A stretch of 64,000 nt of DNA from Dendrobates tinctorius (GCF_039654945.1 NW_027361683.1:11842001-11906000), one strand, 5' to 3'; counted from the stretch's first letter, positions 5,697 to 62,583 are shown. Made by a program: numbers and translations. The notes: generated by a model from the sequence alone, not told the origin.

Positions 5697-5740
5697 TCCA
5701 CACTGATGAGGGGCAACACCACGAAACAGCTGTCTGTGGA
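5697..5740 (+). ncRNA. Type I hammerhead ribozyme (copy 1)
   Basis: TCCACA-CTGATGA-GGGG-CAACA-CCAC-GAAA-CAGCTG-TC-TGTGGA: 6-bp stem I, CUGAUGA and GAAA cores, stem II with one mismatch, palindromic stem III, GUC cleavage triplet. Confidence 0.8.
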
Positions 5741-6097
5741 TGGATACCTGGCCTTGGTATTTCCCTTGTCTTATCTGTAAACTCGTAAAGAGCTGGATAT
5801 TGACTTAAAGGGACACTTAATATGGTGGTAATGGTGGTTTCCGAAAGGAGCCACCCCTTGGCTGGGGCCTTCCCTGGAGGAAGATCTGGCTAGTCCCGTG
5901 TTTGAGACTCTTAACTGAGGCTCCACAGACTTTATTTGCATATTTGTACTTCCCAGGGAGCATTGCACCTAGGATTTCACTGATTGAATGCCTTTGCTGG
6001 CTGCTGTAGTGTTTTCTTTGACAGGTCTCCCTGAGATCAGTGATTGTTTCGTGATGTTGGTCTACTAAGCATTGCTCCCACCTAGCCAGAATCCTAC

Positions 6098-6141
6098 TCC
6101 ACACTGATGAGGGGCAACACCCCGAAACAACTGTCTGTGGA
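6098..6141 (+). ncRNA. Type I hammerhead ribozyme (copy 2)
   Basis: TCCACA-CTGATGA-GGGG-CAACA-CCCC-GAAA-CAACTG-TC-TGTGGA: perfect stems I and II, GUC site. 401 bp from copy 1. Confidence 0.85.
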
Positions 6142-8190
6142 TGGATACCTGGCCTTGGTATTTCCCTTGTCATATCTGTAAATTCGTAAAGAGCTGGATA
6201 TTGACTTAAAGGGCCACTTAATATGGTGGTAATGGTGGTTTCCGAAAGGAGCCACCCCTTGTCTGGGTCCTTCCCTGGAGGAAGATCTGGCTAGTCCCGT
6301 GTTTGAGACTCTTAAATGAGGCTCCATGGACTTTATTTGCATATTTTTATTTCCCAGGGAGCATTGCACCTGGGATTTCACTGATTGAGCACCTTTGCCG
6401 GCTGCCTGTTTTCTTTGACTAGTCTCCCTGAGGTCAGCGATTGTTTCGTGATGAAGGTCCAAAAGGGGTCTAGTTTCCAAAATGGCGTCAAATGTGAGGA
6501 GTTCCACTGTTTAGGCACATCAGGGGCTCTCCAAATGCGACATGGCGACTGTTAATTATGCAGGCAAATTTTACATTCAAAAAGTGAAATGGTGCTCCTT
6601 CCCTTCCGAGCCCTGTCGTGTGCCCAAACAGTAGATTTCCCTCACACATTGGGTATCGGCATGCTCAGAAGAAATTGCAAAACAAAACATATGGTCCATT
6701 TTCTCCTGTTACCCTTGCAAAAGTAAAAAAAAATAGCTCTAAAGGAAAATATTTGTGAAAGAAAAGTAAATGTTTATTTTTTTTCTTCCACATTCCAAAA
6801 ATTTCTGTGAAGAACCTGAAGGGTTAATGAACTTCTTGAATGTGGTTTTGAGTAAATTGAGGGTTGCGGTTTTTAGAATGGTGTCATTTGGAGGTAGTTT
6901 CTGTCATACAGGCCCCTCAAAGTCACTTCAAATGTGAGGTGGTCCCTAAAAAAATGGTTTTGCAAACCTTGTTGTAAAAATGAGAAATTGCTGGTCAACT
7001 TTTAACCGTTATAACTCCCTTACAATTTTTTTTCCAAAATTGTTCTGATGTAAAGTAGACATGTGGAAAATATTATTTATTAACTATTTTGTGCTATATG
7101 ACTCTGATTTAAGGGCTTTAAATTGTGAAATTTTTTCAACATTTTTGCCAAATTTCCATTTTTTTAACAAATAAACACAAGTCACATCAAATAAATTTTG
7201 CCACTATCATAAAGTACAATTTGTCCCGAGAAAACATTCTCAGAGTCACCAGGATCCATTGAAGCGTTCAAGAGTTATTACCTCATAAAGGGACAGTGGT
7301 CAGAATTGTTAAAATTGGCCTGTCCAGGAAGATGAAAACAGGCTTCTGGGTGAATGGATTAATAACAATGTAAATGGCAGTGCCATGTATGAATTTTAAG
7401 ATCACTAGTTGCCCACAGTGCTAACTATTAGCCTCAGTGGCCATTATTTCCTTGTTATTACTCTATAGATTCTTGCTGATACTTGTGTACAGCAAGGAGA
7501 CATAAAAATGGCTCCTTTGTTGGCAAAGACTTGTGCCATGTTGAACGGACTCTGTTTTGCTGGTTTCAACTGCATTGTAACAGCACCTGATGGACCCCAA
7601 GACTGGGGTTGTGGTGCAAGCAAATAGAGAAAGTGTATTATAGGAAAGTGCTGATGGTGGCCATCAAGGGAGAGAAGAAGGTGAGAAAAGGTAGGACATA
7701 TTGCATCTCCAGCCAGTGGAATCCTCAGATCCATGTGTCCTAGGGAGACAAAGACAGCACCAGAAAACAGAAAATACCGGCTTGTTCCAGTTGAACCAGC
7801 AGGGGAGAAGTTTGCAGTGATGACTTCAAAAGGAAGGAGCTTAGCCAAAATTCCCATAAGCTGGAATCAGCACCGCCATCAGAGACCCCGCCATAAAGCC
7901 AGCAGTGGTTCCAAGCATCGCTTGGAGACTCGCCATCCCCTGTTCATGCAGTCATAGTCTGTGTAGATGCAACTTTGCGGTTTAACAGTGACCATACATA
8001 GCAGGGATCAGAGTGGAAGCATACAAGCACACAAACAGTTAGTTTGACGCCAATCTCAGACCGGCGGAAACAGGCACTTGATACTGCCAGTGTCCAAAGA
8101 CTCAGCTTTTTGAGCCACCAGTGCATTACAGAAACCACAGCAAAAAAGAGAAATCTACTGGAGAATATAGAGGTGCTTGAGGAGAAGCCC

Positions 8191-10740
8191 TGTGATGGAG
8201 TCAGCTTTTGCTGAGTCGTTTTCAAGAGTGGACCTTCTGGGTCGTGGCACCCACCCACTGAGGGCGAGCTGACCTTGTGAGGAACCACCCCCTATACAGG
8301 GAGTGTCAGGGGCAAGACCAAGAGGGTGAACCACCATGACTGCTGGAACCAGACGGCCGGCTCAGGTAGACACAATGTGTGAGTGTCTGACACAAGGGAC
8401 ATGCAGGAAACAAGACAAGACACGGCGTGGTTTCAAGGTATCTTCATTAAGGCAAACTCAAGGTAACATCAGGTGCAAGACATGATAACAGAGAAAACAC
8501 AACAAGGTGCGTGCGTGGCACGCCAAGGTCCATGGCATGGTACGTGCCAGGTGGCATGCCTGTTTACAGGCAAGGGCTCAATAGCATCGGACTCCGGACA
8601 GCTGGCAACGATTGACAGGATCAGGGCATCAGTCTGCGGACATCAGCTCTGGAGATCAGGCCGCAGTCGTCAGGCTTACGATCTCTGGCAGCAATCGGCA
8701 GGTTCAGGGCATCTGGCAGGCAAACCAGGGTTCAGGCAAGGAGGCACGACAGAGCTCCAGACATGGTGCGTGTTAGGGAACACGCCAAGATCCAAGGCAA
8801 AGTTCAAGGCAGGGGGCATGCTAGGGGCACACCAGGGTCCAAGGCAAGGTGCCAGGCAGGGTGCATGCTAGGAACATGCCAGGGTCCAAGGCTAGGTGCA
8901 AGGCAGTGTTCAACACACTAGGCAAGGTGCGTGTTTAGGGGCAAGCCAGGGTTCAAGGTCCAAGGTCCTGGGTGTGCTAGAGAAGCCACCAGGATTCAAG
9001 ATTCAAGGTCCTGCGTGTGCTAGAGCCACGCCAGGGGCACGGTACAAAGAATGGTCCTGGCCGTGATAGGAGGCACGCCAGGGTATATGGTTAACAGCAG
9101 GTCTCACACGTGCTAGGGAACACATCGGGCTTTGAGGTTCAGGACATGGTCCTGCACGTGCAGAGGGGCATGCCAGGGTACAAGCTAGGGTAAGGGCCTG
9201 CACATGCTAGGAGGCACGCCAGGGTTCAGGCTAGGGCCTTTGCGTGCAAGAGGGCACGACAGGGTACAGGCTAAGGCCTGTGCGTGCTAGAGGGCACGAC
9301 AGGGTACATTGCAGGACCTGAGTATGCTTTAGAGAAGCACGGGGAGGTATGCCAAGGAGCAGGCAAGGGCCTGTGCATGCTAAGAGGGCACGCAATGCAT
9401 AGTGCAGAGACGGCGTGGGTGCAAGGAAGCACTGAGCATGGCTGGGGCACTGGCTAGCTGGTTAGACTGAGGCTCAGACTGGCAGGCAAGACCAAGGCGA
9501 GCACGGCTGAAGCACAACAGGCAGACACAGCTAAGTCACTGGCCGAAGAGCACAGCTGAGGCACAAACAGGCGGGCACGGCTAAGGTGGGCACGGCTGAG
9601 GCACAGACAAGCGGGCGAGGGAAGACCAGGCGCGTGCAAAGGGCACACGAAGAAACAAGGCAAGGCAAGAAACAAGGCAAGACAAGGCTAGGCAAGGTAC
9701 AGAACAAGGAGCCGAACATGGGCAGAAGCACATAGCCAGGTCAGAGAGAGTATAGGGCTAGCAGCGGAACGTAGGCCAAAGCCCAGAGCCGGGTCAAGGC
9801 AGAACTTTGAGACTAGCCAGGAAATGTGTTAGAGAGCACCATAGGACAGAGTCTAACAGCGGAGCGTAGGCCGAAGCCCAGAGCCGGGTCAAGACAGAAC
9901 CTTGAGACTAGACATGAAATATACTAGCGAGCACCGGAAAACAGAGTAATGAAAACCGGGCAAAGACAGGGAACGAGAGAAGTACTACAAAGTTAAGAAT
10001 GGCAAAGGCAAGACATGATGAAACAGGCAAAGGCAGAGACTTAGGAAATACTACAAGGCACAGAATAGCAAAGACAAGACATGGCACAAAAGACAACACA
10101 AGACATGGCACGAGACATGGCATGAGACAAGAGGCAGAATACAAGCATAGAGCGTGTGCAGAGAGGCACAACAGGGCAACGTGCAGGGGCACAGAATACA
10201 GAGAGTGGCCCAGCAGGACCATGCAGCCTAGCAGGGAAGCAACACGATACTCAGGCCCCGAGCATAGGAAGGGGCGGTCTGATATAGGGCATTAGCACCT
10301 GAATTTCCACGTCAGGACCAGGAGAGGACTTCCGGTTCAGATCCTCCAGGATCATAAAGAGGAGAGCTGGATCAGACTGTGCTGGACCATAGAGAGGGTC
10401 ACATGGTCAGGTCCTCCAGGACCACAGAGAGGATTGCTGGATCAGATTCTGCTGGACCATAGAGAGGGTCACATGGTCAGGGCCAGAGCAGAGACGGGCG
10501 TGCACACAGCAACGGCATGCAGCCATGAGGTGCAGCCTGCTCCAGGAGTGACGCAGCAAAACAGTCATGAGGTGCACTTGCATACTGCTCCAGGGATCAT
10601 GCAGCATAATATTCATGAGGTGTGTGTGCACACTGCTCCAGGGGTCATGCAGCATAACGGACATGACGGATATAACAGTGAGGTGCGCATGCACACTGCT
10701 CAAGGGGTCATGCGGCATATCAGACATTGTGGGCATGACA
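8191..10740. mobile_element. Long solo LTR (2550 bp) with internal degenerate tandem repeats
   Basis: TG(TGATG)...(CATGA)CA termini with a perfect 5-bp TSD AGCCC (8186-8190 / 10741-10745). Purine-rich short repeats at 8750-10250 and ~57-bp repeats at 10525-10720. Confidence 0.8.
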
Positions 10741-11893
10741 AGCCCCTTTGTGCACATCTGAACATCAATAATTGTGTTCTATCTAGGGGGTTTAGAGTCA
10801 TTTTATTACATTTATGAGCTGCTGTGCTGCACCACCAGTAGGCCACTCCTGACATTCATTAGTTTCAGAGTTCCAGGTAAACGCTCAGTGACTACAATAA
10901 GCAAAATTTTTCAGTAAAAGTTAATCTGGCAAGTTTCGTGTTGGTTCTGTCCATGTCCATGGCTTCACTCTATGCTGGGGAGTCCACTCCAATACATGGT
11001 CTACAACAGCTGAGCTATAGGTCACTACTGTTGGTTAGAGCAGGGACCATAACCTAATCACTACGAATACCATGGTAATAAAAGAGTAAAACACTGACCT
11101 AAAATAAGACCGAAATTGCTGTCTCTTACAGAGAAATACACTCTTTAGTGACCTGCATTTTTATAACATGGCAGCCTGCCTGTCCTGCAGTCTCCTATTA
11201 TGGATCTACAGTAACAGGAGACAATGATTGGGACTGGCTGGTCTGTAAAATTAGGCAGCCCTATAGCTTGACACAGTGAATGCAGCCATGATCTACGGTA
11301 TATCAATATGCTAAAATAAAGGTCTAAGATAACGAGGAAGATATTTGTCTTTAGTGTGAGTTCTAAAAGCTCCTGGATGAAGCATTTCTATGCAAAATGA
11401 GCATTGGGTGCAGTGGGCACTTGATCTTTGATCTCTCCTTGAATGACTTTGCCATAAATATACAGGTATTATACTTTCATTTGATGCGTATTGTCTGCTA
11501 TACATGTAATCTCCTATAGATGGCTTACTTGGATTAGTTTATTAACTGCTCTGGCCATACATTCTACTTTTGAGATCCACCTCAGCACATATTTATGAAT
11601 TGTGTATGTATAGCAATGAATATATTGTTTTATCAAATTATATACGTAGGTTCTATTTATTAATTAGTCTGTATACCAACTTTGGTCTTTTTTATCTATT
11701 TATAAACATTTAGACTCAATGTCCCCTTTTCTAGAGTTGAGCGAAACGGGTCGAACAATATCAAAAGTCGCCGACTTTTGGCAAAGTCGGGTTTCATGAA
11801 ACGAAACCCGACCCTAGGATAAGGTCGGCCACGAGGTCGGTGACTTACATGCCAAAGTCGCGTTTCAAAAGTTTGTTTTGCGCTCTTTTTCAG

Positions 11894-12037
11894 CCAATCA
11901 GGATCCACGGACACTGTGGGCAACGTGATGACATAGGCAAGGGTCACCACCATCTTTCAGAAGGGCATGCAAGTGATTGGCTTGCTTGGTGGGCATCACA
12001 GGGGGTATAAAAGGGCGTGCACGCCGAGCGCCATCTT
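11894..12037 (+). promoter_or_regulatory. Putative Pol II promoter of the hAT transposase
   Basis: CCAAT (11894), ATTGG (11976), TATAAAA (12006-12012) and a YY1/initiator-like GCCATCTT (12030-12037), in canonical order and oriented toward the transposase. Confidence 0.6.
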
Positions 12038-12283
12038 ACTTCTGTATAGGGAGAGGTTGCTGATTCTGTAGGGAGAGCGTTAGGCAGGGAAGAAGACAAA
12101 AAAACTGCTTCTGCTGCTAGCGATTTGGCCTGCACAACACAACAGTCACTGTGTGTGCAGTGCAAGGGGAGGCTATATAGTGGTGTATCAGTGGTGTTGG
12201 TTGTTGGGCTGCCCTCTAAGGCTTCCTGACATTCCTGCATTGCTGTTTACCCACTGCTCCGCAAACTGCTTTTTTAAAAGCAA

Positions 12284-15200
12284 TCCAATCTCCCTTATCC
12301 TCTAGTCACTTTTGTCACAGCTGTGCCATCGAGCCTGTGACATAGCGCTCAGATATCAGTGGGCCTCACACAATCCAAAAGTGTCCAGTGTCCAAAAGTG
12401 TGTGCAGAGATTCAAAATCTCCCTTATCCTCTAGTCACTTTGGTCACAGCTGTGCCATCGAGCCTGTCACATAGCGCTCAGATATTCATTGGGCCTCACA
12501 CAATCCAAAAGTGTCCAGTGTCCAAAAGTGTGTGCAGAGATTCAAAATCTCCCTTATCCTCTAGTCACTTTGGTCACAGCTGTGCCATCGAGCCTGTCAC
12601 ATAGCGCTCAGATATCAGTGGGCCTCACACAATCCAAAAGTGTCCAGTGTCCAAAAGTGTGTGCAGAGATTCAAAATCTCCCTTATCCTCTAGACACTTT
12701 GGTCACAGCTGTGCCATCGAGCCTGTCACATAGCGCTCAGATATTCATTGGGCCTCACACAATCCAAAAGTGTCCAGTGTCCAAAAGTGTGTGCAGAGAT
12801 TCAAAATCTCCCTTATCCTCTAGTCACTTTGGTCACAGCTGTGCCATCGAGCCTGTGACATAGCGCTCAGATATTCATTGGGCCTCACACAATCCAAAAG
12901 TGTCCAGTGTCCAAAAGTGTGTGCAGAGATTCAAAATCTCCCTTATCCTCTAGTCACTTTGGTCACAGCTGTGCCATCGAGCCTGTCACATAGCGCTCAG
13001 ATATTCATTGGGCCTCACACAATCCAAAAGTGTCCAGTGTCCAAAAGTGTGTGCAGAGATTCAAAATCTCCCTTATCCTCTAGTCACTTTGGTCACAGCT
13101 GTGCCATCGAGCCTGTCACATAGCGCTCAGATATTCATTGGGCCTCACACAATCCAAAAGTGTCCAGTGTCCAAAAGTGTGTGCAGAGATTCAAAATGTC
13201 CCTTATCCTCTAGTCACTTTGGTCACAGCTGTGCCATCGAGCCTGTCACATAGCGCTCAGATATTCATTGGGCCTCACACAATCCAAAAGTGTCCAGTGT
13301 CCAAAAGTGTGTGCAGAGATTCAAAATCTCCCTTATCCTGTAGTCACTTTGGTCACAGCTGTGCCATCGAGCCTGTCACATAGCGCTCAGATATCAGTGG
13401 GCCTCACACAATCCAAAAGTGTCCAGTGTCCAAAAGTGTGTGCAGAGATTCAAAATCTCCCTTATCCTCTAGACACTTTGGTCACAGCTGTGCCATCGAG
13501 CCTGTCACATAGCGCTCAGATATTCATTGGGCCTCACACAATCCAAAAGTGTCCAGTGTCCAAAAGTGTGTGCAGAGATTCAAAATCTCCCTTATCCTCT
13601 AGTCACTTTGGTCACAGCTGTGCCATCGAGCCTGTGACATAGCGCTCAGATATTCATTGGGCCTCACACAATCCAAAAGTGTCCAGTGTCCAAAAGTGTG
13701 TGCAGAGATTCAAAATCTCCCTTATTCTCTAGTCACTTTGGTCACAGCTGTGCCATCGAGCCTGTCACATAGCGCTCAGATATCAGTGGGCCTCACACAA
13801 TCCAAAAGTGTCCAGTGTCCAAAAGTGTGTGCAGAGATTCAAAATCTCCCTTATCCTCTAGTCACTTTGGTCACAGCTGTGCCATCGAACCTGTCACATA
13901 GCGCTCAGATATCAGTGGGCCTCACACAATCCAAAAGTGTCCAGTGTCCAAAAGTGTGTGCAGAGATTCAAAATCTCCCTTATCCTCTAGTCACTTTGGT
14001 CACAGCTGTGCCATCGAGCCTGTCACATAGCGCTCAGATATTCATTGGGCCTCACACAATCCAAAAGTGTCCAGTGTCCAAAAGTGTGTGCAGAGATTCA
14101 AAATCTCCCTTATCCTCTAGTCACTTTGGTCACAGCTGTGCCATCGAGCCTGTCACATAGCGCTCAGATATTCATTGGGCCTCACACCATCCAAAAGTGT
14201 CCAGTGTCCAAAAGTGTGTGCAGAGATTCAAAATCTCCCTTATCCTCTAGTCACTTTGGTCACAGCTGTGCCATCGAGCCTGTGACATAGCGCTCAGATA
14301 TCAGTGGGCCTCACACAATCCAAAAGTGTCCAGTGTCCAAAAGTGTGTGCAGAGATTCAAAATCTCCCTTATCCTCTAGTCACTTTGGTCACAGCTGTGC
14401 CATCGAGCCTGTCACATAGCGCTCAGATATCAGTGGGCCTCACACAATCCAAAAGTGTCCAGTGTCCAAAAGTGTGTGCAGAGATTCAAAATCTCCCTTA
14501 TCCTCTAGTCACTATGGTCACAGCTGTGCCATCGAGCCTGTGACATAGCGCTCAGATATCAGTGGGCCTCACACAATCCAAAAGTGTCCAGTGTCCAAAA
14601 GTGTGTGCAGAGATTCAAAATCTCCCTTATACTCTAGTCACTTTGGTCACAGCTGTGCCATCGAGCCTGTCACATAGCGCTCAGATATTCATTGGGCCTC
14701 ACACAATCCAAAAGTGTCAAGTGTCCAAAAGTGTGTGCAGAGATTCAAAATCTCCCTTATCCTCTAGTCACTTTGGTCACAGCTGTGCCATAGAGCCTGT
14801 CACATAGCGCTTAGATATTCATTGGGCCTCACACAATCCAAAAGTGTCCAGTGTCCAAAAGTGTGTGCAGAGATTCAAAATCTCCCTTATCCTCTAGTCA
14901 CTTTGGTCACAGCTGTGCCATCGAGCCTGTGACATAGCGCTCAGATATTCATTGGGCCTCACACAATCCAAAAGTGTCCAGTGTCCAAAAGTGTGTGCAG
15001 AGATTCAAAATCTCCCTTATCCTCTAGTCACTTTGGTCACAGCTGTGCCATCGAGCTTGTGACATAGCGCTCAGATATCAGTGGGCCTCACACAATCCAA
15101 AAGTGTCCAGTGTCCAAAAGTGTGTGCAGAGATTCAAAATCTCCCTTATCCTCTAGTCACTTTGGTCACAGCTGTGCCATCGAGCCTGTCACATAGCGCT

Positions 15201-18200
15201 CAGATATCAGTGGGCCTCACACAATCCAAAAGTGTCCAGTGTCCAAAAGTGTGTGCAGAGATTCAAAATCTCCCTTATCCTCTAGTCACTTTGGTCACAG
15301 CTGTGCCATCGAGCCTGTGACATAGCGCTCAGATATTCATTGGGCCTCACACAATCCAAAAGTGTCCAGTGTCCAAAAGTGTGTGCAGAGATTCAAAATC
15401 TCCCTTATCCTCTAGTCACTTTGGTCACAGCTGTGCCATCGAGCCTGTCACATAGCGCTCAGATATTCATTGGGCCTCACACAATCCAAAAGTGTCCAGT
15501 GTCCAAAAGTGTGTGCAGAGATTCAAAATCTCCCTTATCCTCTAGTCACTTTGGTCACAGCTGTGCCATCGAGCCTGTGACATAGCGCTCAGATATCAGT
15601 GGGCCTCACACAATCCAAAAGTGTCCAGTGTCCAAAAGTATGTGCAGAGATTCAAAATCTCCCTTATCCTCTAGTCACTTAGGTCACAGCTGTGCCATCG
15701 AGCCTGTCACATAGCGCTCACATATCAGTGGGCCTCACACAATCCAAAAGTGTCCAGTGTCCAAAAGTGTGTGCAGAGATTCAAAATCTCCCTTATCCTC
15801 TAGTCACTTTGGTCACAGCTGTGCCATCGAGCCTGTCACATAGCGCTGAGATATTCATTGGGCCTCACACAATCCAAAAGTGTCCAGTGTCCAAAAGTGT
15901 GTGCAGAGATTCAAAATCTCCCTTATCCTCTAGTCACTTTGGTCACAGCTGTGCCATCGAGCCTGTGACATAGCGCTCAGATATCAGTGGGCCTCACACA
16001 ATCCAAAAGTGTCCAGTGTCCAAAAGTGTGTGCAGAGATTCAAAATCTCCCTTATCCTCTAGTCACTTTGGTCACAGCTGTGCCATCGAGCCTGTGACAT
16101 AGCGCTCAGATATCAGTGGGCCTCACACAATCCAAAAGTGTCCAGTGTCCAAAAGTGTGTGCAGAGATTCAAAATCTCCCTTATCCTGTAGTCACTTTGG
16201 TCACAGCTGTGCCATCGAGCCTGTCACATAGCGCTCACATATCAGTGGGCCTCACACAATCCAAAAGTGTCCAGTGTCCAAAAGTGTGTGCAGAGATTCA
16301 AAATCTCCCTTATCCTCTAGTCACTTTGGTCACAGCTGTGGCATCGAGCCTGTCACATAGCGCTCAGATATCAGTGGGCCTCACACAATCCAAAAGTGTC
16401 CAGTGTCCAAAAGTGTGTGCAGAGATTCAAAATCTCCCTTATCCTCTAGTCACTTTGGTCACAGCTGTGCCATCGAGCCTGTCACATAGCGCTTAGATAT
16501 TCATTGGGCCTCACACAATCCAAAAGTGTCAAGTGTCCAAAAGTGTGTGCAGAGATTCAAAATCTCCCTTATCCTCTAGTCACTTTGGTCACAGCTGTGC
16601 CATAGAGCCTGTGACATAGCGCTCAGATATTCATTGGGCCTCACACAATCCAAAAGTGTCCAGTGTCCAAAAGTGTGTGCAGAGATTCAAAATCTCCCTT
16701 ATCCTATAGTCACTTTGGTCACAGCTGTGCCATCGAGCCTGTCACATAGCGCTCAGATATTCATTGGGCCTCACACAATCCAAAAGTGTCCAGTGTCCAA
16801 AAGTGTGTGCAGAGATTCAAAATCTCCCTTATCCTCTAGTCACTTTGGTCACAGCTGTGCCATCGAGCCTGTGACATAGCGCTCAGATATCAGTGGGCTT
16901 CACACAATCCAAAAGTGTCCAGTGTCCAAAAGTGTGTGCAGAGATTCAAAATCTCCCTTATCCTGTAGTCACTTTGGTCACAGCTGTGCCATCGAGCCTG
17001 TCACATAGCGCTCAGATATCAGTGGGCCTCACACAATCCAAAAGTGTCCAGTGTCCAAAAGTGTGTGCAGAGATTCAAAATCTCCCTTATCCTCTAGTCA
17101 CTTTGGTCACAGCTGTGCCATCGAGTCTGTCACATAGCGCTCAGATATTCATTGGGCCTCACACAATCCAAAAGTGTCCAGTGTCCAAAAGTGTGTGCAG
17201 AGATTCAAAATCTCCCTTATCCTCTAGTCACTTTGGTCACAGCTGTGCCATCGAGCCTGTCACATAGAGCTCAGATATTCATTTGGGCCTCACACAATCC
17301 AAAAGTGTCCAGTGTCCAAAAGTGTGTGCAGAGATTCAAAATCTCCCTTATCCTCTAGTCACTTTGGTCACAGCTGTGCCATTGAGCCTGTCACATAGCG
17401 CTCAGATATCAGTGGGCCTCACACAATCCAAAAGTGTCCAGTGTCCAAAAGTGTGTGCAGAGATTCAAAATCTCCTTTATCCTCTAGTCACTTTGGTCAC
17501 AGCTGTGCCATCGAGCCTGTCACATAGCGCTCAGATATTCATTGGGCCTCACACAATCCAAAAGTGTCCAGTGTCCAAAAGTGTGTGCAGAGATTCAAAA
17601 TCTCCCTTATCCTCTAGTCACTTTGGTCACAGCTGTGCCATCGAGCCTGTGACATAGCGCTCAGATATCAGTGGGCCTCACACAATCCAAAAGTGTCCAG
17701 TGTCCAAAAGTGTGTGCAGAGATTCAAAATCTCCCTTATCCTCTAGTCACTTTGGTCACAGCTGTGCCATCGAGCCTGTGACATAGCGCTCAGATATCAG
17801 TGGGCCTCACACAATCCAAAAGTGTCCAGTGTCCAAAAGTGTGTGCAGAGATTCAAAATCTCCCTTATCCTGTAGTCACTTTGGTCACAGCTGTGCCATC
17901 GAGCCTGTCACATAGCGCTCACATATCAGTGGGCCTCACACAATCCAAAAGTGTCCAGTGTCCAAAAGTGTGTGCAGAGATTCAAAATCTCCCTTATCCT
18001 CTAGTCACTTTGGTCACAGCTGTGGCATCGAGCCTGTCACATAGCGCTCAGATATCAGTGGGCCTCACACAATCCAAAAGTGTCCAGTGTCCAAAAGTGT
18101 GTGCAGAGATTCAAAATCTCCCTTATCCTCTAGTCACTTTGGTCACAGCTGTGCCATCGAGCCTGTCACATAGCGCTTAGATATTCATTGGGCCTCACAC

Positions 18201-19945
18201 AATCCAAAAGTGTCAAGTGTCCAAAAGTGTGTGCAGAGATTCAAAATCTCCCTTATCCTCTAGTCACTTTGGTCACAGCTGTGCCATAGAGCCTGTGACA
18301 TAGCGCTCAGATATTCATTGGGCCTCACACAATCCAAAAGTGTCCAGTGTCCAAAAGTGTGTGCAGAGATTCAAAATCTCCCTTATCCTATAGTCACTTT
18401 GGTCACAGCTGTGCCATCGAGCCTGTCACATAGCGCTCAGATATTCATTGGGCCTCACACAATCCAAAAGTGTCCAGTGTCCAAAAGTGTGTGCAGAGAT
18501 TCAAAATCTCCCTTATCCTCTAGTCACTTTGGTCACAGCTGTGCCATCGAGCCTGTGACATAGCGCTCAGATATCAGTGGGCTTCACACAATCCAAAAGT
18601 GTCCAGTGTCCAAAAGTGTGTGCAGAGATTCAAAATCTCCCTTATCCTGTAGTCACTTTGGTCACAGCTGTGCCATCGAGCCTGTCACATAGCGCTCAGA
18701 TATCAGTGGGCCTCACACAATCCAAAAGTGTCCAGTGTCCAAAAGTGTGTGCAGAGATTCAAAATCTCCCTTATCCTCTAGTCACTTTGGTCACAGCTGT
18801 GCCATCGAGTCTGTCACATAGCGCTCAGATATTCATTGGGCCTCACACAATCCAAAAGTGTCCAGTGTCCAAAAGTGTGTGCAGAGATTCAAAATCTCCC
18901 TTATCCTCTAGTCACTTTGGTCACAGCTGTGCCATCGAGCCTGTCACATAGAGCTCAGATATTCATTTGGGCCTCACACAATCCAAAAGTGTCCAGTGTC
19001 CAAAAGTGTGTGCAGAGATTCAAAATCTCCCTTATCCTCTAGTCACTTTGGTCACAGCTGTGCCATTGAGCCTGTCACATAGCGCTCAGATATCAGTGGG
19101 CCTCACACAATCCAAAAGTGTCCAGTGTCCAAAAGTGTGTGCAGAGATTCAAAATCTCCTTTATCCTCTAGTCACTTTGGTCACAGCTGTGCCATCGAGC
19201 CTGTCACATAGCGCTCAGATATTCATTGGGCCTCACACAATCCAAAAGTGTCCAGTGTCCAAAAGTGTGTGCAGAGATTCAAAATCTCCCTTATCCTCTA
19301 GTCACTTTGGTCACAGCTGTGCCATCGTGCCTGTGACATAGCGCTCAGATATCAGTGGGCCTCACACAATCCAAAAGTGTCCAGTGTCCAAAAGTGTGTG
19401 CAGAGATTCAAAATCTCCCTTATCCTCTAGTCACTTTGGTCACAGCTGTGCCATCGAGCCTGTCACATAGCGCTCAGATATCAGTGGGCCTCACACAATC
19501 CAAAAGTATCCAGTGTCCAAAAGTGTGTGCAGAGATTCAAAATCTCCCTTATCCTCTAGTCACTTTGGTCACAGATGTGCCATCGAGCCTGTCACTTTGC
19601 GCTCAGATATTCATTGGGCTTCACACAATCCAAAAGTGTCCAGTGTCCACAAGTGTGTGCAGAGATTCAAAATCTCCCTTATCCTCTAGTCACTTTGGTC
19701 ACAGCTGTGCAATCGAGCTTGTGACATAGCGCTCAGATATCAGTGGGCCTCACACAATCCAAAAGTGTCCAGTGTCCAAAAGTGTGTGCAGAGATTCAAA
19801 ATCTCCCTTATCCTCTAGTCACTTTGGTCACAGCTGTGCCATCGAGCCTGTCACATAGCGCTCAGATATCAGTGGGCCTCACACAATCCAAAAGTGTCCA
19901 GTGTCCACAAGTGTCTGCAGAAATTCAAAATCTCCCCTGTCCTAT
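12284..19945 (+). repeat. Tandem array of 129/130-bp monomers (~59 copies) inside the hAT element
   Basis: Monomer GGGCCTCACACAATCCAAAAGTGTCCAGTGTCCAAAAGTGTGTGCAGAGATTCAAAATCTCCCTTATCCTCTAGTCACTTTGGTCACAGCTGTGCCATCGAGCCTGT(C/G)ACATAGCGCTCAGATAT(CAGT/TCATT). Copies are nearly identical. Confidence 0.98.
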
Positions 19946-20012
19946 AGACACCTTGTACCTTGTTTTACATTACTATATAGTTTGTTGGATTTTGTCTACA
20001 TTTCTACCAAAA

Positions 20013-23000
20013 ATGAGGAAGGCTGGTGGAAGAGGCCGTGGAATTGGGCGGGGGTTGGCAGCTGGTAATGATGGTGTTGGTGGTGGATCTGATGGTAGTG
20101 GCAAGAGCAAAATAGGACCGAATGCAGGAGGTGTTGAGCCTGCGTCATCGTCTGGCTACATAAGGCCTCGAACGCTTAGTTTTCTAGGAGTTGGCAAACC
20201 GCTTTTAAAGCCAGAGCATCAGGAAAAAGTTTTGTCTTACATTGCTGACTCAGCCTCCAGCTCTATCGCCTCCTCTTCTTCAGTTGTAAAAAGTAAAAGC
20301 ACTGAGTCGTCATTGGAGGCTCATGTTCATGAACCACACCTTTCCTTGTGTCCTTCACCCCAACCAAGATTGAAGGATGACGCAGGCCATACTACTGATT
20401 ACTCCATGGAGCTGTTTTCACATACCATGCCTGGATTATCAAGTCAAATGGTGAATTACCCAGGCCAAGATGAATCTGACATGGAGTGCACTGATGCACA
20501 GCCGCTGATGGATGATTCTGCTGGTACATTCACTCAGAGCACTACATTGTCCTCGCAGTGTACAGAGCCAGATTCTGACCCTGATGAGACTCAGGTGCCC
20601 CTTCCCGCACACTATACCACCATACAAGGTGACACAGAGGAAGGTGCACATGACATAGAAGAGGAGGTGATGGATGACCCAGTTGTTGACCCAGATTGGC
20701 ATCCATTGGGGGAAGAGGGTGCTGCTTCCAATAGCTCAGATGAGGAGCATCCACAGCAGACATCGACATCGCAACAGCTGTTATCTGGCAGGCCCGGAGC
20801 ACTCCAAAGACAGGTTCCAAACATCAAAAGAGTTGCTGGACAGCTTGTCCAGAGGGTCAAAAGATCACAGCGTGCTAGGCCGCAAAATGTCTGCCAAAGT
20901 AGGAAGAGTGCAGTGTGGCACTTTTTTGAACAAAATCCTCATGATCAGGCCAAGGTTATCTGTAAGAAGTGCGCAAAGACCTTTAGCCGAGGGAAAAATC
21001 TGAAAAATTTGAATACCAGTTGCATGCTTAGACATTTAACCAGCATGCACTTGCAAGCGTGAACACAACACCAAACCTCAAGTGCCACATGTGCAACTGA
21101 TCACAACGAAGGTAGTCAGCAACGCTACATTGTTTCCCCCACTGTAAGCCCACCGGTTAGCACAGCAGCAAATGTTGAGGTGTCGTTGCAAGGCCACTGC
21201 AGTCAGGGAATCCCACTGTTATATCAACGAAAGACTGATTCTAGGCCATCAGAAAGAACACCAACTCCATCACCATCATCAACCCTCTCTCAGTCCGCCC
21301 TGTCCACCGCTACTTCCACCATATGCAGCTCTCAAGTCCAGCTCACCCTCCCAGACACTATGAGTAGGTCAAGAAAGTACTCAGTCTCTCATCCGCGTAC
21401 ACTGGGTTTGAACGCCCACATTGCCAAACTAATCTTGTTTGACATGATGCCCTTTCGGTTGGTGGAAAGCACAGCTTTCCGCAAACTCATGGCCTATGCA
21501 GTACCACGCTATGACCTACCCAGTCGCCACTTCTTCTCTCGCAAAGCCATCCCAGCCCTCCACCATCATGTGAAAGACCGCATTGTCCATGCACTCAAGC
21601 AGTCAGTGAGCGGAAAGGTGCACCTCACAACTGATGCATGGTCCAGTCGGCATGGCCAGGGCCGTTACGTGTCCATCACTGCGCACTGGGTTAATGTGGT
21701 GGATGCAGGGTCCACAGGGGACAGCGGTGGTGGGACAGTGCTGCCTAGCCCACGGTATAGGAAACAGTTGGCTGTAGGCGTTCGACCCTCCTCCTCCTCC
21801 AGAAGCGAAAGCTCGTCCACAGAGCGCAGTCGTACGAGCACTCCATCTGCAGCTGCCACTGTTGCACACGATGTGTCCCCCTATCGAGCAGCTAGTGGAA
21901 AGCGTCAGCAGGCTGTGTTGCAGATGATGTGTTTGGGCAACAGACACACCGCCGAGGTGCTGGCCGAGTACTTGAAGCGACAAACTGAGTCATGGCTGGG
22001 CAGTGTACATCTTGAGGCAGGCAAGGTAGTTAGTGATAACGGCCATAATTTTGTGGCAGCCATAGCCCTTTCAAAACTCAGCCACATACCTTGCTTGGCT
22101 CACACCTTGAACCTGGTGGTGCAGTGCTTCCTCAAAAATTATCCGGAGTTAACAGCCCTGCTCCAGAAGGTGCGAAGACTGTGCGCGCACATCCGCCGGT
22201 CGCCTGTACACTCCGTTCGTATGCAGAAGCTGCAGCGATTGCTCCACCTTCCCAACCACCGCCTCATTATCGACATTGCAACAAGGTGGAACTCCACCCT
22301 GCACATGGTGGAGCGGCTGTGCGAGCAGAGGCAGGCCATAATGCATTTGTGGGAGGATACACGGCCAGGCACTTTGAGAGCAGACATGGAGTTGACAGGT
22401 GTGCAGTGGTCGAAGCTGAAAGACCTCTGTAAAGTCCTTCAGTGTTTTGAGGAATGCACACGGCTGGTAAGCGCAGACGACGCCATCCTAAGCATGAGCA
22501 TCCCACTTATGCGTCTGCTCATGCAAACTTTGACGCACCTTAAGGAGCAGGCGTCTGCAGCCAATGTTGATGAGGAGGAAGAGGAGGAGGGAATCCTTGA
22601 TGACATTCAGCCATTGTCTGCTCAGGGACCTCTCCTGGACGAGGTGGAGGAAGAAGAGGAGGAGGAGGAGGATGATGGGGATGATTACTTAGGGGAGGAA
22701 GATGCATCTCGTGGGGCAAGTGAAAATTTTGGCGTGGCAAGGTCTGGTACAGGGTTTGTGCGTGACTGGAGGGATGTGGATTTGCCAGAAAGTGCTCCTC
22801 CACCCAGCACTCGCAGTGCATCATTGACACCGGGAACATTGGCCCACATGTCAGATTATGCCTTGCAGATCCTAAAAAGGGACCCCCGCATTGCCAAAAT
22901 GATGAACGATGACGACTACTGGTTGGCCAGCATCCTGGATCCACGCTATAAAGGCAAATTACAAAACATCATGCCACAGGAGAACCTTGACCTAATATTG

Positions 23001-23546
23001 GCTAATAAACAAGCAACTCTGGTAAATCGGTTGCTTGAGGCATTCCCAGCACACAGCAGCGGTGATGCTTCTCACACGAGCCGTATGGGCCGGGGGCAAC
23101 TTGGCAGAGGTGTTCGTGGTGCACACAGCAGAAGTGGCGTTGGAGACAGGGGTTTCATGACAATGTTGTGGACTGATTTTTCAAATACCGCTCACACAAC
23201 TGGTAATACTGCATCGATGGAAAGTGACAGGAGACAGCAGTTGTCAACTATGGTTACAAACTACTTTTCCTCCCATATCGATGTTCTCCCACACAGGTCA
23301 TTCCCCTTTGACTATTGGGCCGCTAAACTGGACACCTGGCCTGAATTGGCCCAATATGCCTTACAGGAGCTCGCTTGCCCAGCTGCAAGTGTGCTATCGG
23401 AAAGAGTCTTCAGTGCAGCTGGATCAATCCTGACAGAAAAAAGGACCCGTCTGTCAACCCAAAATGTGGATGATCTAACCTTCATTAAAATGAACCATGC
23501 ATGGGTTTCCAAGGATTTTGTCCCACCTTCCCCTGATGACACATAG
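20013..23546 (+). pseudogene. hAT transposase (BED finger, DDE core, dimerization domain), ~1177 codons with one in-frame TGA at 21060-21062
   Basis: ORFs 19743-21062 and 21180-23546 are in the same frame. BED finger SAVWHFF...CKKC...MLRHLTSMH. Core motifs LTTDAW, VSDNG, CLAHTLNL, TRWNST, LDPRYK, CPAASVLSERVFSAAG. Confidence 0.93.
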
Positions 23547-23968
23547 GGTGACAGAAAAATGGCTTGCTTTGGTCCACCTCTTCCTGGGACTTCACCTATT
23601 TCGCCTTTTGCATCAGCTGAATGTCCAACATCAACATATGCCACTTTCTAAAACTCCCTAACTGTGCTGCCTCCCCCCCCATGGCCGGGGTCACCACCTA
23701 GCGCACGACACCGTGCGAGTGCCGTTGCCCTGGACAGGTGGGTAGGCTGACTCTTGGGCGCGGGCACTGGCACAGGTTCCCTCATAGTGCAATCAAGTGT
23801 CTCTGATGGTGGTGGTGCACACCCGCCGTCAGACACACCGCTGTACTATGAGGGGCCCAGTGCCAGTACCGACGCCCACGAGTGGGCCCCCCTTGCTTGG
23901 GCAGGTCCCCAGCATTTGCAATCTTTACCTCTCCCTGCTCCTCCGCTGTGTAATCTGGGCCGTCAAAT

Positions 23969-24357
23969 CCATACTGTGCCTGACACCGTCTGAGCCTGCC
24001 TCCTGATGTTTAGACATATATTTTGAATGTGTACGCTATCCATACATGTTATCTGGGGATACGGTACCCTTTCTAACCTTTGTGCAATCACGTGCAATCC
24101 ATACTGGGCCTAACACCGTCTGAGCCTGCCTCCTGAGACATATATTTTGAATGTGTACGCTATCCATACATGTTATCTGGGGATACGGTACCCTTTCTAA
24201 CATTTGTGCATTCACTTGCAATCCATACTGGGCCTAACACCGTCTGAGCCTGCCTCCTGAGACATATATTTTGAATGTGTACGCTATCCATACATGTTAT
24301 CCGGGGATACGGTACCCTTTCTCACCTTTGTGCAATCACGTGTAATCCATACTGGGC
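23969..24357 (+). repeat. Three ~120-130-bp tandem repeats 3' of the transposase
   Basis: Repeated CCATACTGGGCCTAACACCGTCTGAGCCTGCCTCCTGA...GGGGATACGGTACCCTTTCT...TTTGTGCAATCACGTG. Confidence 0.9.
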
Positions 24358-24466
24358 GTGAGAACGGCTGGCGAGCTGTTAAGCAAGCTACAGCACCTGT
24401 GGTTTGCACACGTAAGTTTTTCATTTTTTCAGGAATGACGGTTAGGCCTAATTCCAGAACTGCGGT

Positions 24467-24939
24467 TGACCTGCACTTACTGGGAAATCATTGTTCGCAG
24501 GTAATAATTGTAATCAGTGATCCCCATCACTAACGTTGTTCAGCGGGTTATCTGCACCTGTAAGCGACAAACGCTGGCCTTTTCAGTGTAGCGCACATGC
24601 AGCCACGGACATGTAAGGGCATGACACACCAGTTATTGGCCAATCTCATGTGCCAGAGCCTCACGTGTCCCTCTAGTAAGCCGGACTCGGACCGCGGGGC
24701 ATGACGGAGTCTCGTTCGTTAACGGAATTAAGCTTGCAATGTGTGCATCTGTTCTGTAGCTGGCATGGTTGAGGTTTCCCAGGTGGAGTCGAATTTAACC
24801 GTAGGCTCCACTCCTGGTGGTGCCCTTCTGGACATTCCTTTAAGGTTCAGTTTTGCAACCATACTGCCCACGTAAAACAAACACTTTGCCTTCATGAACG
24901 CTGTTTGGAGGGTCATGACTCGTGGGAATAACGCCGCCC
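24467..24939 (-). pseudogene. Degenerate 18S rRNA-derived fragment (roughly nt 1100-1660 of vertebrate 18S, with internal deletions)
   Basis: The + strand reads as the reverse complement of 18S, in collinear blocks: CACTTACTGGGAA; GATCCCCATCAC; CAGTGTAGCGC..TGCAGCC.CGGACAT.TAAGGGCAT; GAGTCTCGTTCGTTA.CGGAATTAA; GGCTCCACTCCTGGTGGTGCCCTTC; TTGCAACCATACT; GGGAATAACGCCGCC. Confidence 0.9.
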
Positions 24940-26563
24940 AATCAGTTAACCTGCTAGAGAGATCCTTCGTTGCTCCCAAGCATGACATCACACTCCCTAG
25001 GAAGAAGGTAATGCCACTGTGGCGACCGTACTCCTGGGGGCGACACAAGTGCACTGATGCCCAGCCACTGCTCGATGAATCTGCTGGTACATTGACCCAG
25101 ACCACTACATTCCCCTCGCACGCTACCCGGCCTGAATCTGACCCTGATGAAACTCAGGTTACCCTTCCCATATACAGTTCCATCTTACACGGTGACAAAG
25201 AGGAAGCTGCAGATGAAAGTGCAGGTTCGGCCCACCCGCCATCAGACACACCACCGTACTATCAGGGGCCCTGTGCCAGTGCCGTCGCCAACGAGTGGGC
25301 CCCCCCTGCTTGCCCAGGATCACAGCACTTGCAAAGTTGAAATACTGTGCAGTGAGATGGAAGATGGGGACGACGAGGAGTCTAGACTAGTACAGGGATT
25401 CCCTAGCGAGGAGACTTATTTGATTGTTTTCAATGTTGGGACAGCAATTTTTGGGGAGCACTATACTCTGGAGAATGATAGATGGGGCCCACCATACACT
25501 GGAACATTCCAAAGGTGGACATCAGACACTGGAACAGCATTTACAGGGCCCATTATACACTAGAGCATTAGAAATGGGGCCCATTATGTTTGGAGCATTA
25601 TTTGGGCCCATAAGACAGTGGAGCTTCATCCATGGGGACCAACATATACTGTAGCATTATGTGGAGCTCATCATATACTGTTTCAAACATTATATGGGAC
25701 CAATGATTCTGTATGGAGAAATAGATGGGCCTCGTCATGAGATGTAAAAAGTGAGGTATTTTTCATTGTACTATACCGCTATTTCTCTGCCGTATCGGAG
25801 CATGATGAGTTGTGGTATGTGTTAAAGGGGCGCTCTTTCGCCCAGGGCACATGAAAACCTGCAGCCAGCCCTCCCCCCACACAACTTTAGCCAAATAACC
25901 CTCATTTTTCAGTGCGTAACTTGTATTATGAAGTTAATTAAGGTTGACAAGCTTAAGTAAGAAGAATTGATGCTTTTGGCATTCAAATGGGCACTGTAGG
26001 TGTGTTTCCTGTCCTCCTCTCACTGCCGACTTTTATTCCCCATTGACTTACATTGGGTTTCGTGTTTCGGGACGACCCCGACTTTTCCCTATAATCGGAC
26101 GATCTTGCTCGACCCGACTTTTGGAAAAGTCGGGTTTCACGAAACGAAACGCGACCCTAAAAAACCAAAAGTCACTCAACTCTACCCTTTTCTTATCTGT
26201 GTTATCTCATTATTATATTATTTTTGTTCTTTTTTTATATTCTAAATAAATGTGATGTTTCTCATAAATTTTGGCTTGCATTATTTCTAATTTTGGGTTA
26301 TTGTACTGTTAGTTCTACAGTGACCTGCATCGTTGAGTTCTGATGAAACCTATGAGAAACATTTCTGCAACTGTTGTTCTAAGGGGGAGCATTCCTCCTT
26401 GTTAAGACAAGCTGACATAAGGAGACTTAGGGTATATGTCCATGCACATAGGGTATATGTCAATGAACATATACGGAATCACAGCATCCTATTCATAGAC
26501 TGTCTTATTTATCTTGAGGGTACTGAGTGTCTTTGCAAAATAAATAAACATGCGGCGTTCTAG

Positions 26564-27626
26564 TGGAGCGCCCAGCCAGGGCAGTGGGGTACTCGATACC
26601 GGGCTGCTTCTGAAAGGGGCAGTGTCACAGCGGAGGTGACCCGGTCCGTGGCCCTGCATGTCCAGTAAAAGAGGTATATTTACAAGGGATGAGAAATGAA
26701 GAGTTTTTGCAATAAGTGTTTGTGAAACCACCTGTTGTATCTTATCAATAGGGACCAGCGCTGTAGTGCAGATCCTCTGGGGCAGATGGTGTGATGCAGC
26801 AATGATGGAATAGCTCTCCACAGGCAGCGTTGTAGTCCCAGGGCAGATGAGAAATATGTTGAAGAATAGATGGGGAAGTAGTAGGTAGCAAGGGATGCAG
26901 CAGTGCTGAGAAGGTGATACAGGAAGAATTCAAAGGACACAACAGAGTGTAGTTTCTTTTACCTTTTAGTGTGCTTTGTTGGTACAATCCAGGATTCAGA
27001 TTACAGATGGTACAGGAGTTGGTCAGCCTGGAAGCAAATTGGGAATCTCTCTATACAGATGCGTTGTGAGGTCTCCTTTTCTAGCTCTATTCTGAAGTAC
27101 TTGCGGTTCTGAACTCCACACAACTTCCTCTTTCTGTCTGTTACTTAGAACTCCACTCGCATGACAGGTAGCTGTAGCCTCCTTTATGAACTGCCCTTAA
27201 TGGCGTCTCTGGCTCACACGTTGCTACTGTGTCATCGAATCTCAGTTGGGAAAAAAGCATTTACAGCCTTTGTTCCTCCAGTTTCTGCTGTGGGACCTTT
27301 AGCATCCACACAGCCTTGGACTCCGGCGCCCGGTTCTTGGCGCTTCAGCTTGGGGACGAGCTCTGCTATAGCTCCAAATTCCCAGCTCATCTCCCACGTC
27401 CTCACTCTTCCCTGTCCATATTCTAACTAACTTCCCATTCCTGACAACAGAGAGCAGCTGCTCTGCAGTTAGGTTCAGAGCTCCCTCTGCTGGCCTGGAG
27501 TAGGAACTGCGTTGTGTGCTGGAGCTACCTGATAGAGAGATCCTATCACTGCCTCCAGGCATGTCATTACTCTCCCTAGGAGGGAGGCAAGGCCACTGTG
27601 GAGACCGTACTCCTGGCAGCGCCACA
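26564..27626. mobile_element. Solo LTR (1063 bp) inserted in a small MITE
   Basis: TGGAGCGCCC...GCAGCGCCACA termini with 4-bp TSD CTAG (26560-26563 / 27627-27630). The host MITE has AGGGTAT...ATACCCT ends (~26449-27822). Confidence 0.75.
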
Positions 27627-28271: not shown

Positions 28272-29877
28272 CAGTGGGGCAAAAAAGTATTTAGTCAGTC
28301 AGCAATAGTGCAAGTTCCACCACTTAAAAAGATGAGAGGCATCTGTAATTTACATCATAGGTAGACCTCAATTATGGAAGACAAACTGAGAAAAAAAAAT
28401 CCAGAAAATCACATTGTCTGTTTTTTTTTCATTTTATTTGCATATTATGGTGGAAAATAAGTATTTGGTCAGAAACAAGCAATCAAGATTTCTGGCTCTC
28501 ACAGACCTGTAACTTCTTCTTTAAGAGTCTCCTCTTTCCTCCACTCATTACCTGTAGTAATGGCACCTGTATAAACTTGTTATCAGTATAAAAAGACACC
28601 TGTGCACACCCTCAAACAGTCTGACTCCAAACTCCACTATGGTGAAGACCAAAGAGCTGTCAAAGGACACCAGAAACAAAATTGTAGCCCTGCACCAGGC
28701 TGGGAAGACTGATTCTGCAATAGCCAACCAGCTTGGAGTGAAGAAATCAACTGTGGGAGCAATAATTAGAAAATGGAAGACATACAAGACCACTGATAAT
28801 CTCCCTCGATCTGGTGCTCCACGCAAAATCCCACCCCGTGGGGTCAGAATGATCACAAGAACGGTGAGCAAAAATCCCAGAACCACGCGGGGGGACCTAG
28901 TGAATGAACTGCAGAGAGCTGGGACCAATGTAACAAGGCCTACCATAAGTAACACACTACGCCACCATGTACTCAGATCCTGCAGTGCCAGACGTGTCCC
29001 ACTGCTTAAGCCTGTACATGTCCGGGCCCGTCTGAAGTTTGCTAGAGAGCATTTGGATGATCCAGAGGAGTTTTGGGAGAATGTCCTATGGTCTGATGAA
29101 ACCAAACTGGAACTGTTTGGTAGAAACACAACTTGTCGTGTTTGGAGGAAAAAGAATACTGAGTTGCATCCATCAAACACCATACCTACTGTAAAGCATG
29201 GTGGTGGAAACATCATGCTTTGGGGCTGTTTCTCTGCAAAGGGGCCAGGATGACTGATCCGGGTACATGAAAGAATGAATGGGGCCATGTATCGTGAGAT
29301 TTTGAGTGCAAACCTCCTTCCATCAGCAAGGGCATTGAAGATGAAACGTGGCTGGGTCTTTCAACATGACAATGATCCAGAGCACACTGCCAGGGCAACG
29401 AAGGAGTGGCTTCGTAAGAAGCATTTCAAGGTCCTGGAGTGGCCTAGCCAGTCTCCAGATCTCAACCCTATAGAAAACCTTTGGAGGGAGTTGAAAGTCC
29501 GTGTTGCCAAGCGAAAAGCCAAAAACATCACTGCTCTAGAGGAGATCTGCATGGAGGAATGGGCCAACATACCAACAACAGTGTGTGGCAACCTTGTGAA
29601 GACTTACAGAAAACGTTTGACCTCTGTCATTGCCAACAAAGGATATATCACAAAGTATTGAGATGAAATTTTGTTTCTGACCAAATACTTATTTTCCACC
29701 ATAATATGCAAATAAAATGAAAAAAAAACAGACAATGTGATTTTCTGGATTTTTTTTACTCAGTTTGTCTCCCATAGTTGAGGTCTACCTATGATGTAAA
29801 TTACAGACGCCTCTCATCTTTTTAAGTGGTGGAACTTGCACTATTGCTGACTGACTAAATTCTTTTTTGCCCCACTG
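28272..29877 (+). mobile_element. Full-length Tc1-like transposon (1606 bp, long TIRs)
   Basis: TA-CAGTGGGGCAAAAAAGTATTTAG...CTAAATTCTTTTTTGCCCCACTG-TA, with ~210-bp TIRs and a transposase inside. Confidence 0.97.
28639..29661 (+). pseudogene. Tc1 DD34E transposase, 340 codons with one TGA (29251-29253)
   Basis: ORFs 28639-29253 and 29275-29661 are in the same frame. Paired-like HTH N-terminus; WSDET, KHGGG..MLWGCF, FQHDND and [11 protein letters not shown] motifs. Confidence 0.95.
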
Positions 29878-37970: not shown

Positions 37971-38601
37971 TGCAGCCCAAATGTTCTTTTTTGGAAGTTG
38001 TCTTAATGTCCATCCATTACAATCCAAACCCATTTTGTTCTGGAAATCATGTTTACTCCTCCTGCTTCTGCAACAAGTACTTAGTATTCATCTATGTATA
38101 CCCCCACTTGGCTAATGTTTTAAAATTTGGAAATCATTGTGCAATGGTGAAAATTGTACTCCCTATCTCTAGCATTTATGATAACTGCAAATTTTATTGT
38201 GAGGTCCCCATCACAGTCTCTTTTAGCGTATATGATACAGACCCCTTGGTTAATTTTTGTAAACCTTTGTATATTTCTTTGTATATTGTGCAATTGTGAA
38301 ACTTGTACTCCCTATCTCTACCAATTATAGTAACCGCAGAATTTATTGTGAAGTCCCAGTCACGGTCTATTTCGGAATGTATGATACAGACCCCTTGGGT
38401 AATTTTTGGAAACCTTTGTACGTTGTGCAATTGTGAAACTTATACACCCTATCTCTATGAATTGCAATAACTGAAAAATTGATTGTTAGGTCCTCATCAC
38501 AATCTCTTTATGCGTGTATGATACAGATCCCTTGGGTAATTTTTCAGAACCTTTGTTTATTGTGCAATAGTGAAACTTGAACTCCCTATCCATAGCAATT
38601 A

Positions 38602-57747: not shown

Positions 57748-58140
57748 TGTGTGAGTGAGAGTGAATGTGTGTGCATGAGTGTGAGTGTGTGAGTGTGATA
57801 GTGAGTGTGAGAGTGAATGTGAGTGTGTGAGAGTGAGTGTGAGTGTGAGTGTGTGAGTGTGACTGAGTGTGAGAGTGTGAATGTTACTGTGAGAGTGTGA
57901 GAATGTGAGAGTGTGAGTGTGTGACTGTATATGTATGAGTGTGAGTGTGTGAGTGTGACTGACTGTGATAGTGTGAGTGTATGAGTGTGAGTGTGAATGT
58001 GTGAGTGTGAGAGTGAGTGTGAGAGTGTGAGAGTGTGAGAGTGTGACTGAGTATGAGAGTGTGAATCTGAATGTGTGTGAGTGTGACTGAGTGTGAGAGT
58101 GTGAATCTGTGTGTGAGTGTGAGTGAGTGTGTGAGCGTAA
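57748..58140. repeat. (GT/GAGT)n compound microsatellite
   Basis: Direct reading: GTGAGTGTGAGTGTGAGA... Confidence 0.95.
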
Positions 58141-62482: not shown

Positions 62483-62583
62483 TTAGGGTTAGGGCTAGGG
62501 TTATGGCTAGGTTAGGGCTAGGGTTAGGGCTAGGGTTAGGGTTAGGGCTGGGATTAGGGTTAGGGGTGTGTTGGGGTTAGGGG
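62483..62583 (+). repeat. Degenerate interstitial (TTAGGG/CTAGGG)n tract
   Basis: TTAGGGTTAGGGCTAGGGTTATGGCTAGG... Confidence 0.85.

Follow-up and report, generated by a model that had tools for sequence, protein, structure and literature searches.

A 14.45-kb hAT transposon copy of a poison frog: an apparently young insertion with a 129/130-nt tandem array in its putative 5' leader

Introduction

Why should a hAT transposon in a frog genome be 14,453 bases long, and when did its extra parts arise? The element in question lies at 11732-26184 of a 64,000-nucleotide (nt) stretch of the dyeing poison frog, Dendrobates tinctorius (GCF_039654945.1 NW_027361683.1:11842001-11906000), hereafter the window, from whose first letter all positions are counted. 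An initial annotation of the window had described the element as much larger than the classic autonomous hATs and as loaded with captured cargo; the first statement stands (14.45 kb against about 3-5 kb), and the second is not supported as recent cargo of this copy. The reading that we favour, with a probability of roughly 0.7, is that of a young copy from a dendrobatid poison-frog family of BED-finger hATs; the copy would have inherited the modules of its 3' arm and would carry, in the 5' leader of its transposase message, a tandem array that changes in length.

Poison-frog genomes reach several gigabases and consist of repeats for about three-quarters. In the dyeing poison frog assembly, hAT elements account for 3.9%, and tandem repeats and satellites go unmentioned in the genome paper (PMC11152451).

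The ends of the element

The element is delimited, from the outside inward, by a target duplication, terminal inverted repeats, and subterminal regions with a recurring heptamer:

11724-11731, no strand: left target-site duplication, CCCTTTTC, read from the sequence
11732-11743, plus strand: 5' terminal inverted repeat, TAGAGTTGAGCG, 12 nt
11744-11860, no strand: 5' subterminal region with four AAAGTCG motifs (11764+, 11772-, 11783+, 11854+), from a motif search
26027-26172, no strand: 3' subterminal region with four AAAGTCG motifs (26027-, 26079-, 26115-, 26126+), from a motif search
26173-26184, minus strand: 3' terminal inverted repeat, TAGAGTTGAGTG as read on the minus strand, 12 nt
26185-26192, no strand: right target-site duplication, CCCTTTTC, read from the sequence

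The same 8 bp thus stand on both sides, and the inverted ends agree at 11 of their 12 positions, the sole mismatch being a CpG to TpG change; both fit the hAT pattern YARNG. The initial annotation's view of one hAT unit enclosed by a target duplication is borne out by these features. The 22-nt left end has a single occurrence in the window (0 expected). A metagenome scan with the same 22 nt gave one exact match, in a GC-rich bacterial contig (L001, 2462-2483), which was dismissed as chance, as it falls within a coding frame and the contig has nothing else in common with the window.

The heptamer AAAGTCG occurs nine times in the 64 kb, and eight of these sites fall within the first 130 and the last 160 nt of the element, in both orientations. 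The two clusters can be read as further, independent evidence of transposon ends. The binding of hAT transposases to short motifs that recur in subterminal regions is known, and has been shown for Herves (PMC3143072). Membership in the hAT superfamily is indicated jointly by the 8-bp target duplication, the inverted ends, the dimerisation domain described below, and the subterminal motifs at both ends, which are predicted binding sites.

A transposase gene with a single visible lesion

The coding part of the element comprises a long frame with recognisable hAT domains:

20013-23546, plus strand: transposase frame, starting with the ATG at 20013, of 1,177 codons ahead of the terminal stop, including one in-frame TGA
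20907-21050, plus strand: BED zinc finger (PF02892, E 6e-12)
21060-21062, plus strand: premature TGA at a position that is Trp (HLQAW) in close homologues, from the alignment
23283-23492, plus strand: C-terminal hAT dimerisation region, which contains the SER motif that aligns with Hermes (PF05699, E 7.5e-12)

As first proposed, the transposase makes up only about a quarter of the element (3.5 of 14.45 kb). It matches the transposase of Hermes, whose structure is solved, with an E-value of 8.5e-15, and the paired motifs VSDNG and VTDRG, RWNST and RWNST, and SERVFS and SERTFS place the second catalytic Asp (in VSDNG), the RWNST motif and the Glu of SER in register with Hermes; the first Asp (TTDAWS) was assigned from its motif only and lies outside the reported Hermes alignment. 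The protein relatives are in keeping with a dendrobatid genome: the closest, with 73% identity, are gene models of Ranitomeya variabilis and R. imitator, followed at about 44% by remoter ones in Dendrobates tinctorius, Phyllobates, Anomaloglossus and other frogs. A scan of the transposase against NCBIfam gave no match, as expected for a eukaryotic transposase, and an exact look-up of eight open reading frames (ORFs) of the element found none of them in the collection searched.

The frame is interrupted right after the BED finger. When it was read through with an X at the stop and aligned with eleven homologues, Trp was found at the TGA position in 10 of the 11, including all four closest. The transposase had initially been called intact; its in-frame TGA instead replaces a conserved Trp, so that in its present state the copy is not autonomous and is predicted from its sequence to be incapable of making the full-length protein. 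Because this is the single visible lesion in 1,177 codons, the copy appears young, in keeping with the age first suggested. Its history would be that of a cut-and-paste insertion, with an 8-bp target duplication, which was later disabled by a single nonsense mutation.

Old modules in the 3' arm

Between the terminal stop and the 3' subterminal region lie several non-coding segments:

23745-23888, plus strand: imperfect hairpin with 58-nt arms in the 3' non-coding arm (z = -7.5)
23966-24370, plus strand: mini-array of 124 nt x about 3.1, from a tandem-repeat scan
24438-24869, minus strand: decayed, internally shortened 18S ribosomal RNA (rRNA) fragment, model positions 1118-1666 (Rfam SSU_rRNA_eukarya)
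24949-25047, plus strand: 100-nt piece, 82% identical to window positions 27527-27626 outside the element, from blastn
25048-25216, plus strand: old copy (80%) of the transposase N-terminal coding sequence 20485-20653, from self-comparison
25230-25334, plus strand: old copy (85%) of the hairpin arm region 23817-23921, from self-comparison
25447-25681, plus strand: degenerate repeats of about 30 nt (repeat families D3, D7 and D11)

The other components named initially, the mini-array, the hairpin, the self-duplicated segments and the 18S-derived piece, can thus be located inside the element. The 18S piece spans 549 model positions and scores 100 bits (E 8e-26) against a gathering score of 50; at gathering thresholds it is the only Rfam match in the whole window, and the scan recovered no hammerhead family, at 5671-6453 or elsewhere. 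The likeness between 24949-25047 and 27527-27626 probably reflects a fragment of a shared short repeat.

What bears on the origin of these modules is their age relative to that of the gene. Sequence divergence from the sources amounts to 15-20% for the internal duplicates, and the 18S piece has moved a long way from a eukaryotic consensus that is strongly conserved. The idea that they are recently captured cargo of this copy fails on this point, since such strong divergence stands beside a near-intact gene. Had the modules arisen in this copy after its insertion, the gene would by now be in ruins. Given a decay of 15-25% in the modules against one lesion in the 3.5-kb gene next to them, they appear to descend from an active master-element lineage and were most likely inherited passively from the family rather than captured by this copy. 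The hairpin, the mini-array, the 18S relic and the old self-duplicates would accordingly have been acquired, and have decayed, in the line of active master elements before they were passed on.

Probable growth of the 129/130-nt array

The largest component of the element, and the main reason for its 14.45 kb, lies upstream of the gene:

12287-19955, plus strand: array of 59 full monomers of 129/130 nt plus a partial 60th, from a tandem-repeat scan and monomer split
15849-19327, plus strand: error-free tandem duplication of 13 monomers (1,684 nt), from self-comparison

The array covers 7.7 kb (period 129, 59.2 copies, 97% matches) and sits wholly within the inverted ends (12287-19955 inside 11732-26184), which agrees with the array of some 59 copies of a 129/130-bp unit that had been assigned to the element at the outset. 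All 114 CCAAAAGTG sites of the window fall in it, and neither these sites nor blastn reveal monomer-like sequence outside the element in the 64 kb. A metagenome scan with a 28-mer of the monomer returned 0 matches, and a homologue search with a 167-residue ORF encoded by the array gave no match, a result judged uninformative. Two suggested relationships of the monomer were rejected. It carries CCAAAAGTGT twice, compared with CAAAAGTCG in the ends, a loose resemblance only, and the array contains no exact AAAGTCG, so that the monomers are not regarded as bearers of the subterminal motif; a kinship with the 124-nt unit of the mini-array is unconvincing, as a 13-nt stretch is all that the two have in common.

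The monomers fall into two interleaved subtypes, of 129 and 130 nt, and differ from their consensus at 0-4 positions, with the exception of m57 near the 3' edge (7 differences); the final three monomers belong to the most divergent ones. Superimposed on this pattern are duplications of whole blocks. Shifted by 1,684 nt, the array matches itself without a mismatch over 1,795 consecutive bases (15849-17643 = 17533-19327), and the match extends to 2,058 nt with three mismatches allowed; older duplications of 6 and of 10 monomers are also visible. From these multi-monomer duplications it follows that the array would grow by multi-monomer unequal exchange or by replication slippage. At least 1.68 kb of its length is very recent growth, or else an assembly error. 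The unusual length of this copy would then be due in part to very recent duplications, and the size of the element would be to that extent a product of array growth rather than a constant of the family.

The second of these possibilities, an array length inflated by the assembler, above all through the identical 1.68-kb duplication, seems highly improbable to us. It is true that 1,795 identical bases at an offset of 13 monomers, within a near-identical array, mark a typical spot for such an error. However, many monomer-specific variants give the array a unique order, its 7.7 kb fit within the span of ordinary long reads, and the window contains no runs of N.

If the growth is real, it could also be private to this insertion: the family leader would normally contain one or a few monomers, and the whole 7.7 kb would have expanded in place by unequal exchange. 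The uniformity of the monomers speaks for such an expansion, and the error-free block together with the older 6- and 10-monomer duplications would attest to ongoing growth. We nevertheless consider it decidedly unlikely, since the two subtypes are interleaved throughout the array and variants shared between monomers record several duplication rounds, which is much history to accommodate in the lifetime of a gene with one lesion. An array already present in the family, and still changing in length in this copy, is the reading we prefer.

A putative promoter and leader, and the absence of ATG

Where the array stands with respect to the transposase message depends on the sequences that flank it:

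11894-12013, plus strand: RNA polymerase II (Pol II)-type promoter motifs, namely CCAAT at 11894, inverted CCAAT (ATTGG) at 11976 and TATAAAAG at 12006-12013, assigned from motifs only
12030-12286, plus strand: unique part of the putative leader, with no ATG and no good splice donor, from the sequence
19956-20012, plus strand: proximal leader with the TATA-like motif CTATATAG about 40 nt ahead of the start codon, assigned by motif

The upstream set of CCAAT, ATTGG and TATAAAAG forms a canonical-looking, putative Pol II promoter, and at the other side of the array 57 unique bases separate it from the transposase ATG. The non-redundant content of the interval from the TATA box to the start codon amounts to 470 nt, defined as 12030-12286, one monomer and 19929-20012. 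These 470 nt contain no sense ATG, where a first-order Markov model predicts 7.9 (P(0) = 0.00025); only three trinucleotides are absent from them, of which two contain CpG (ACG and CGG), ATG being the only CpG-free one. The antisense strand of the same 470 nt has 7 ATGs. Between the TATA box and the array no credible splice donor was found, the best site scoring about 0 bits with a crude matrix built from general knowledge. Because 470 nt pass without an ATG and no credible donor precedes the array, a long leader that is free of upstream AUGs and includes the array is favoured, with moderate confidence. The array would in that case lie in a transcribed 5' leader, downstream of a TATA/CCAAT promoter and upstream of the start codon, and would be tolerated there because its monomer lacks an AUG.

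Several observations weigh against the reading of an inherited, leader-borne array in a young hAT copy. That the array was inherited across the family is something we infer from this single copy. The absence of ATG from the monomer alone is a weak signal, with about 2.2 expected and a P of about 0.1; the 341 unique nt contribute most of the effect. The TATA-like CTATATAG, 40 nt upstream of the start codon, could be the real promoter. Each monomer has an acceptor-like pyrimidine tract followed by AG (TCTCCCTTATCCTCTAG), and TCTCCCCTGTCCTATAG stands at 19931. Four monomers have gained an ATG (at 13196, 14514, 15640 and 19575), although these gains would fit a relaxation of constraint after the insertion, in a dead copy. 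At the ends, the hAT subgroups prefer target duplications of the form nTnnnnAn or nnnTAnnn, and CCCTTTTC, a single site, fits neither.

Some of the same observations lend themselves to a different account of the array, as a functionless passenger that lies outside the transposase message, either because transcription starts near 19971 or because the array is spliced out through an acceptor-like site of a monomer. The proximal TATA-like motif would serve the former version and the acceptor-like sites the latter, the ATG-free monomer being by itself not significant; a 5' leader of 8 kb would, moreover, be extreme. This account is a tentative but serious alternative. Against it stands the unique segment 12030-12286, which follows the strong TATAAAAG and is also free of ATG, so that the combined P falls to the value given above, and splicing would have to start from a donor-like site of negligible score.

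In the opposite direction, the array might be the very part of the element that is selected: a leader of several kilobases, free of upstream AUGs, whose length tunes the output of transposase, perhaps because it lowers translation or because it feeds small-RNA silencing. We regard this as unlikely; if it were true, array length would be a heritable and fast-mutating dial on the activity of the transposon. The leader-borne array of an inherited family element, changing in length and tolerated rather than selected, remains our preferred reading.

The surroundings of the insertion

The element lies in a transposon-rich stretch. A Tc1/Sleeping-Beauty-type transposase N-terminus and Ty3/gypsy-type gag and integrase are found at 28639-29253, 49469-50017 and 52370-53110, and two short arrays, separated by about 1.6 kb and built from a related 137-nt unit (38136-38601 and 40228-40484), could be arms or internal repeats of another element. 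Just to the left of the hAT copy, at 8777-10666, lies a 1.9-kb cluster of GC-rich, purine-skewed minisatellites with periods of 47, 40, 25, 95, 35/70 and 48; the interval 8001-10000 has a GC content of 0.55 and an AT skew of +0.32. Farther to the right, an impure microsatellite rich in GT and GA extends over about 390 nt (57749-58144), and an interstitial run of 17 telomere-type TTAGGG repeats occupies 62483-62582.

Comparison with known elements and significance

In its basic architecture the element resembles Ac, Hermes, Herves and Tol2 and the BED-finger hATs related to ZBED1/4/6, with which it shares the 8-bp target duplication and short ends starting with TAGAG. Like autonomous and BED-finger hATs, it has a subterminal motif repeated at both ends, a BED finger, motifs that can be aligned to Hermes and a dimerisation domain. 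Unlike Ac, Hermes, Herves and Tol2, with their about 3-5 kb, this copy of 14.45 kb interposes a 7.7-kb array between promoter and start codon; its frame also departs from that of classic hATs in its 1,177 codons, in its extended low-complexity N-terminus and, in this copy, in its premature stop.

The capture of gene fragments by DNA transposons is known as transduplication of the Pack-MULE type. The present element is similar in that it contains a host-gene piece, from 18S rRNA, antisense to the transposase. It differs in that this piece is strongly decayed and shortened, an old relic with no sign of function rather than a recent capture.

A closer parallel for the array is provided by DNA transposons that carry tandem repeats, which include the MITEs (miniature transposable elements with inverted repeats) Xstir and miDNA4 of Xenopus, DTC84 of the clam Donax, the Helentron-borne arrays of oysters and Tetris of Drosophila virilis (PMC9659126, PMC12628747, PMC3879986, PMC7492417). 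Among array-carrying transposons, non-autonomous elements prevail (PMC9659126). The principle of the transposon-borne array is therefore already established for MITEs and Helentrons, Xenopus included. As in Xstir, miDNA4, DTC84, the Helentron arrays and Tetris, a satellite-like array lies between the ends, appears to vary by unequal exchange, and would spread by transposition. Unlike those elements, almost all of them short and non-autonomous, the element described here encodes a transposase and has its 59 monomers in one defined position, within the putative 5' leader.

If such a family exists, it would be a nuisance for annotation, through false 18S matches and collapsed arrays, and it could serve as a model of how far a 5' leader can grow. 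Transposition of copies of this kind would scatter short satellite-like arrays across the genome, and a transposase-encoding hAT family whose mutable array occupies a fixed place would, if the reading is correct, be a direct source both of dispersed satellite-like DNA and of differences in size between its copies.

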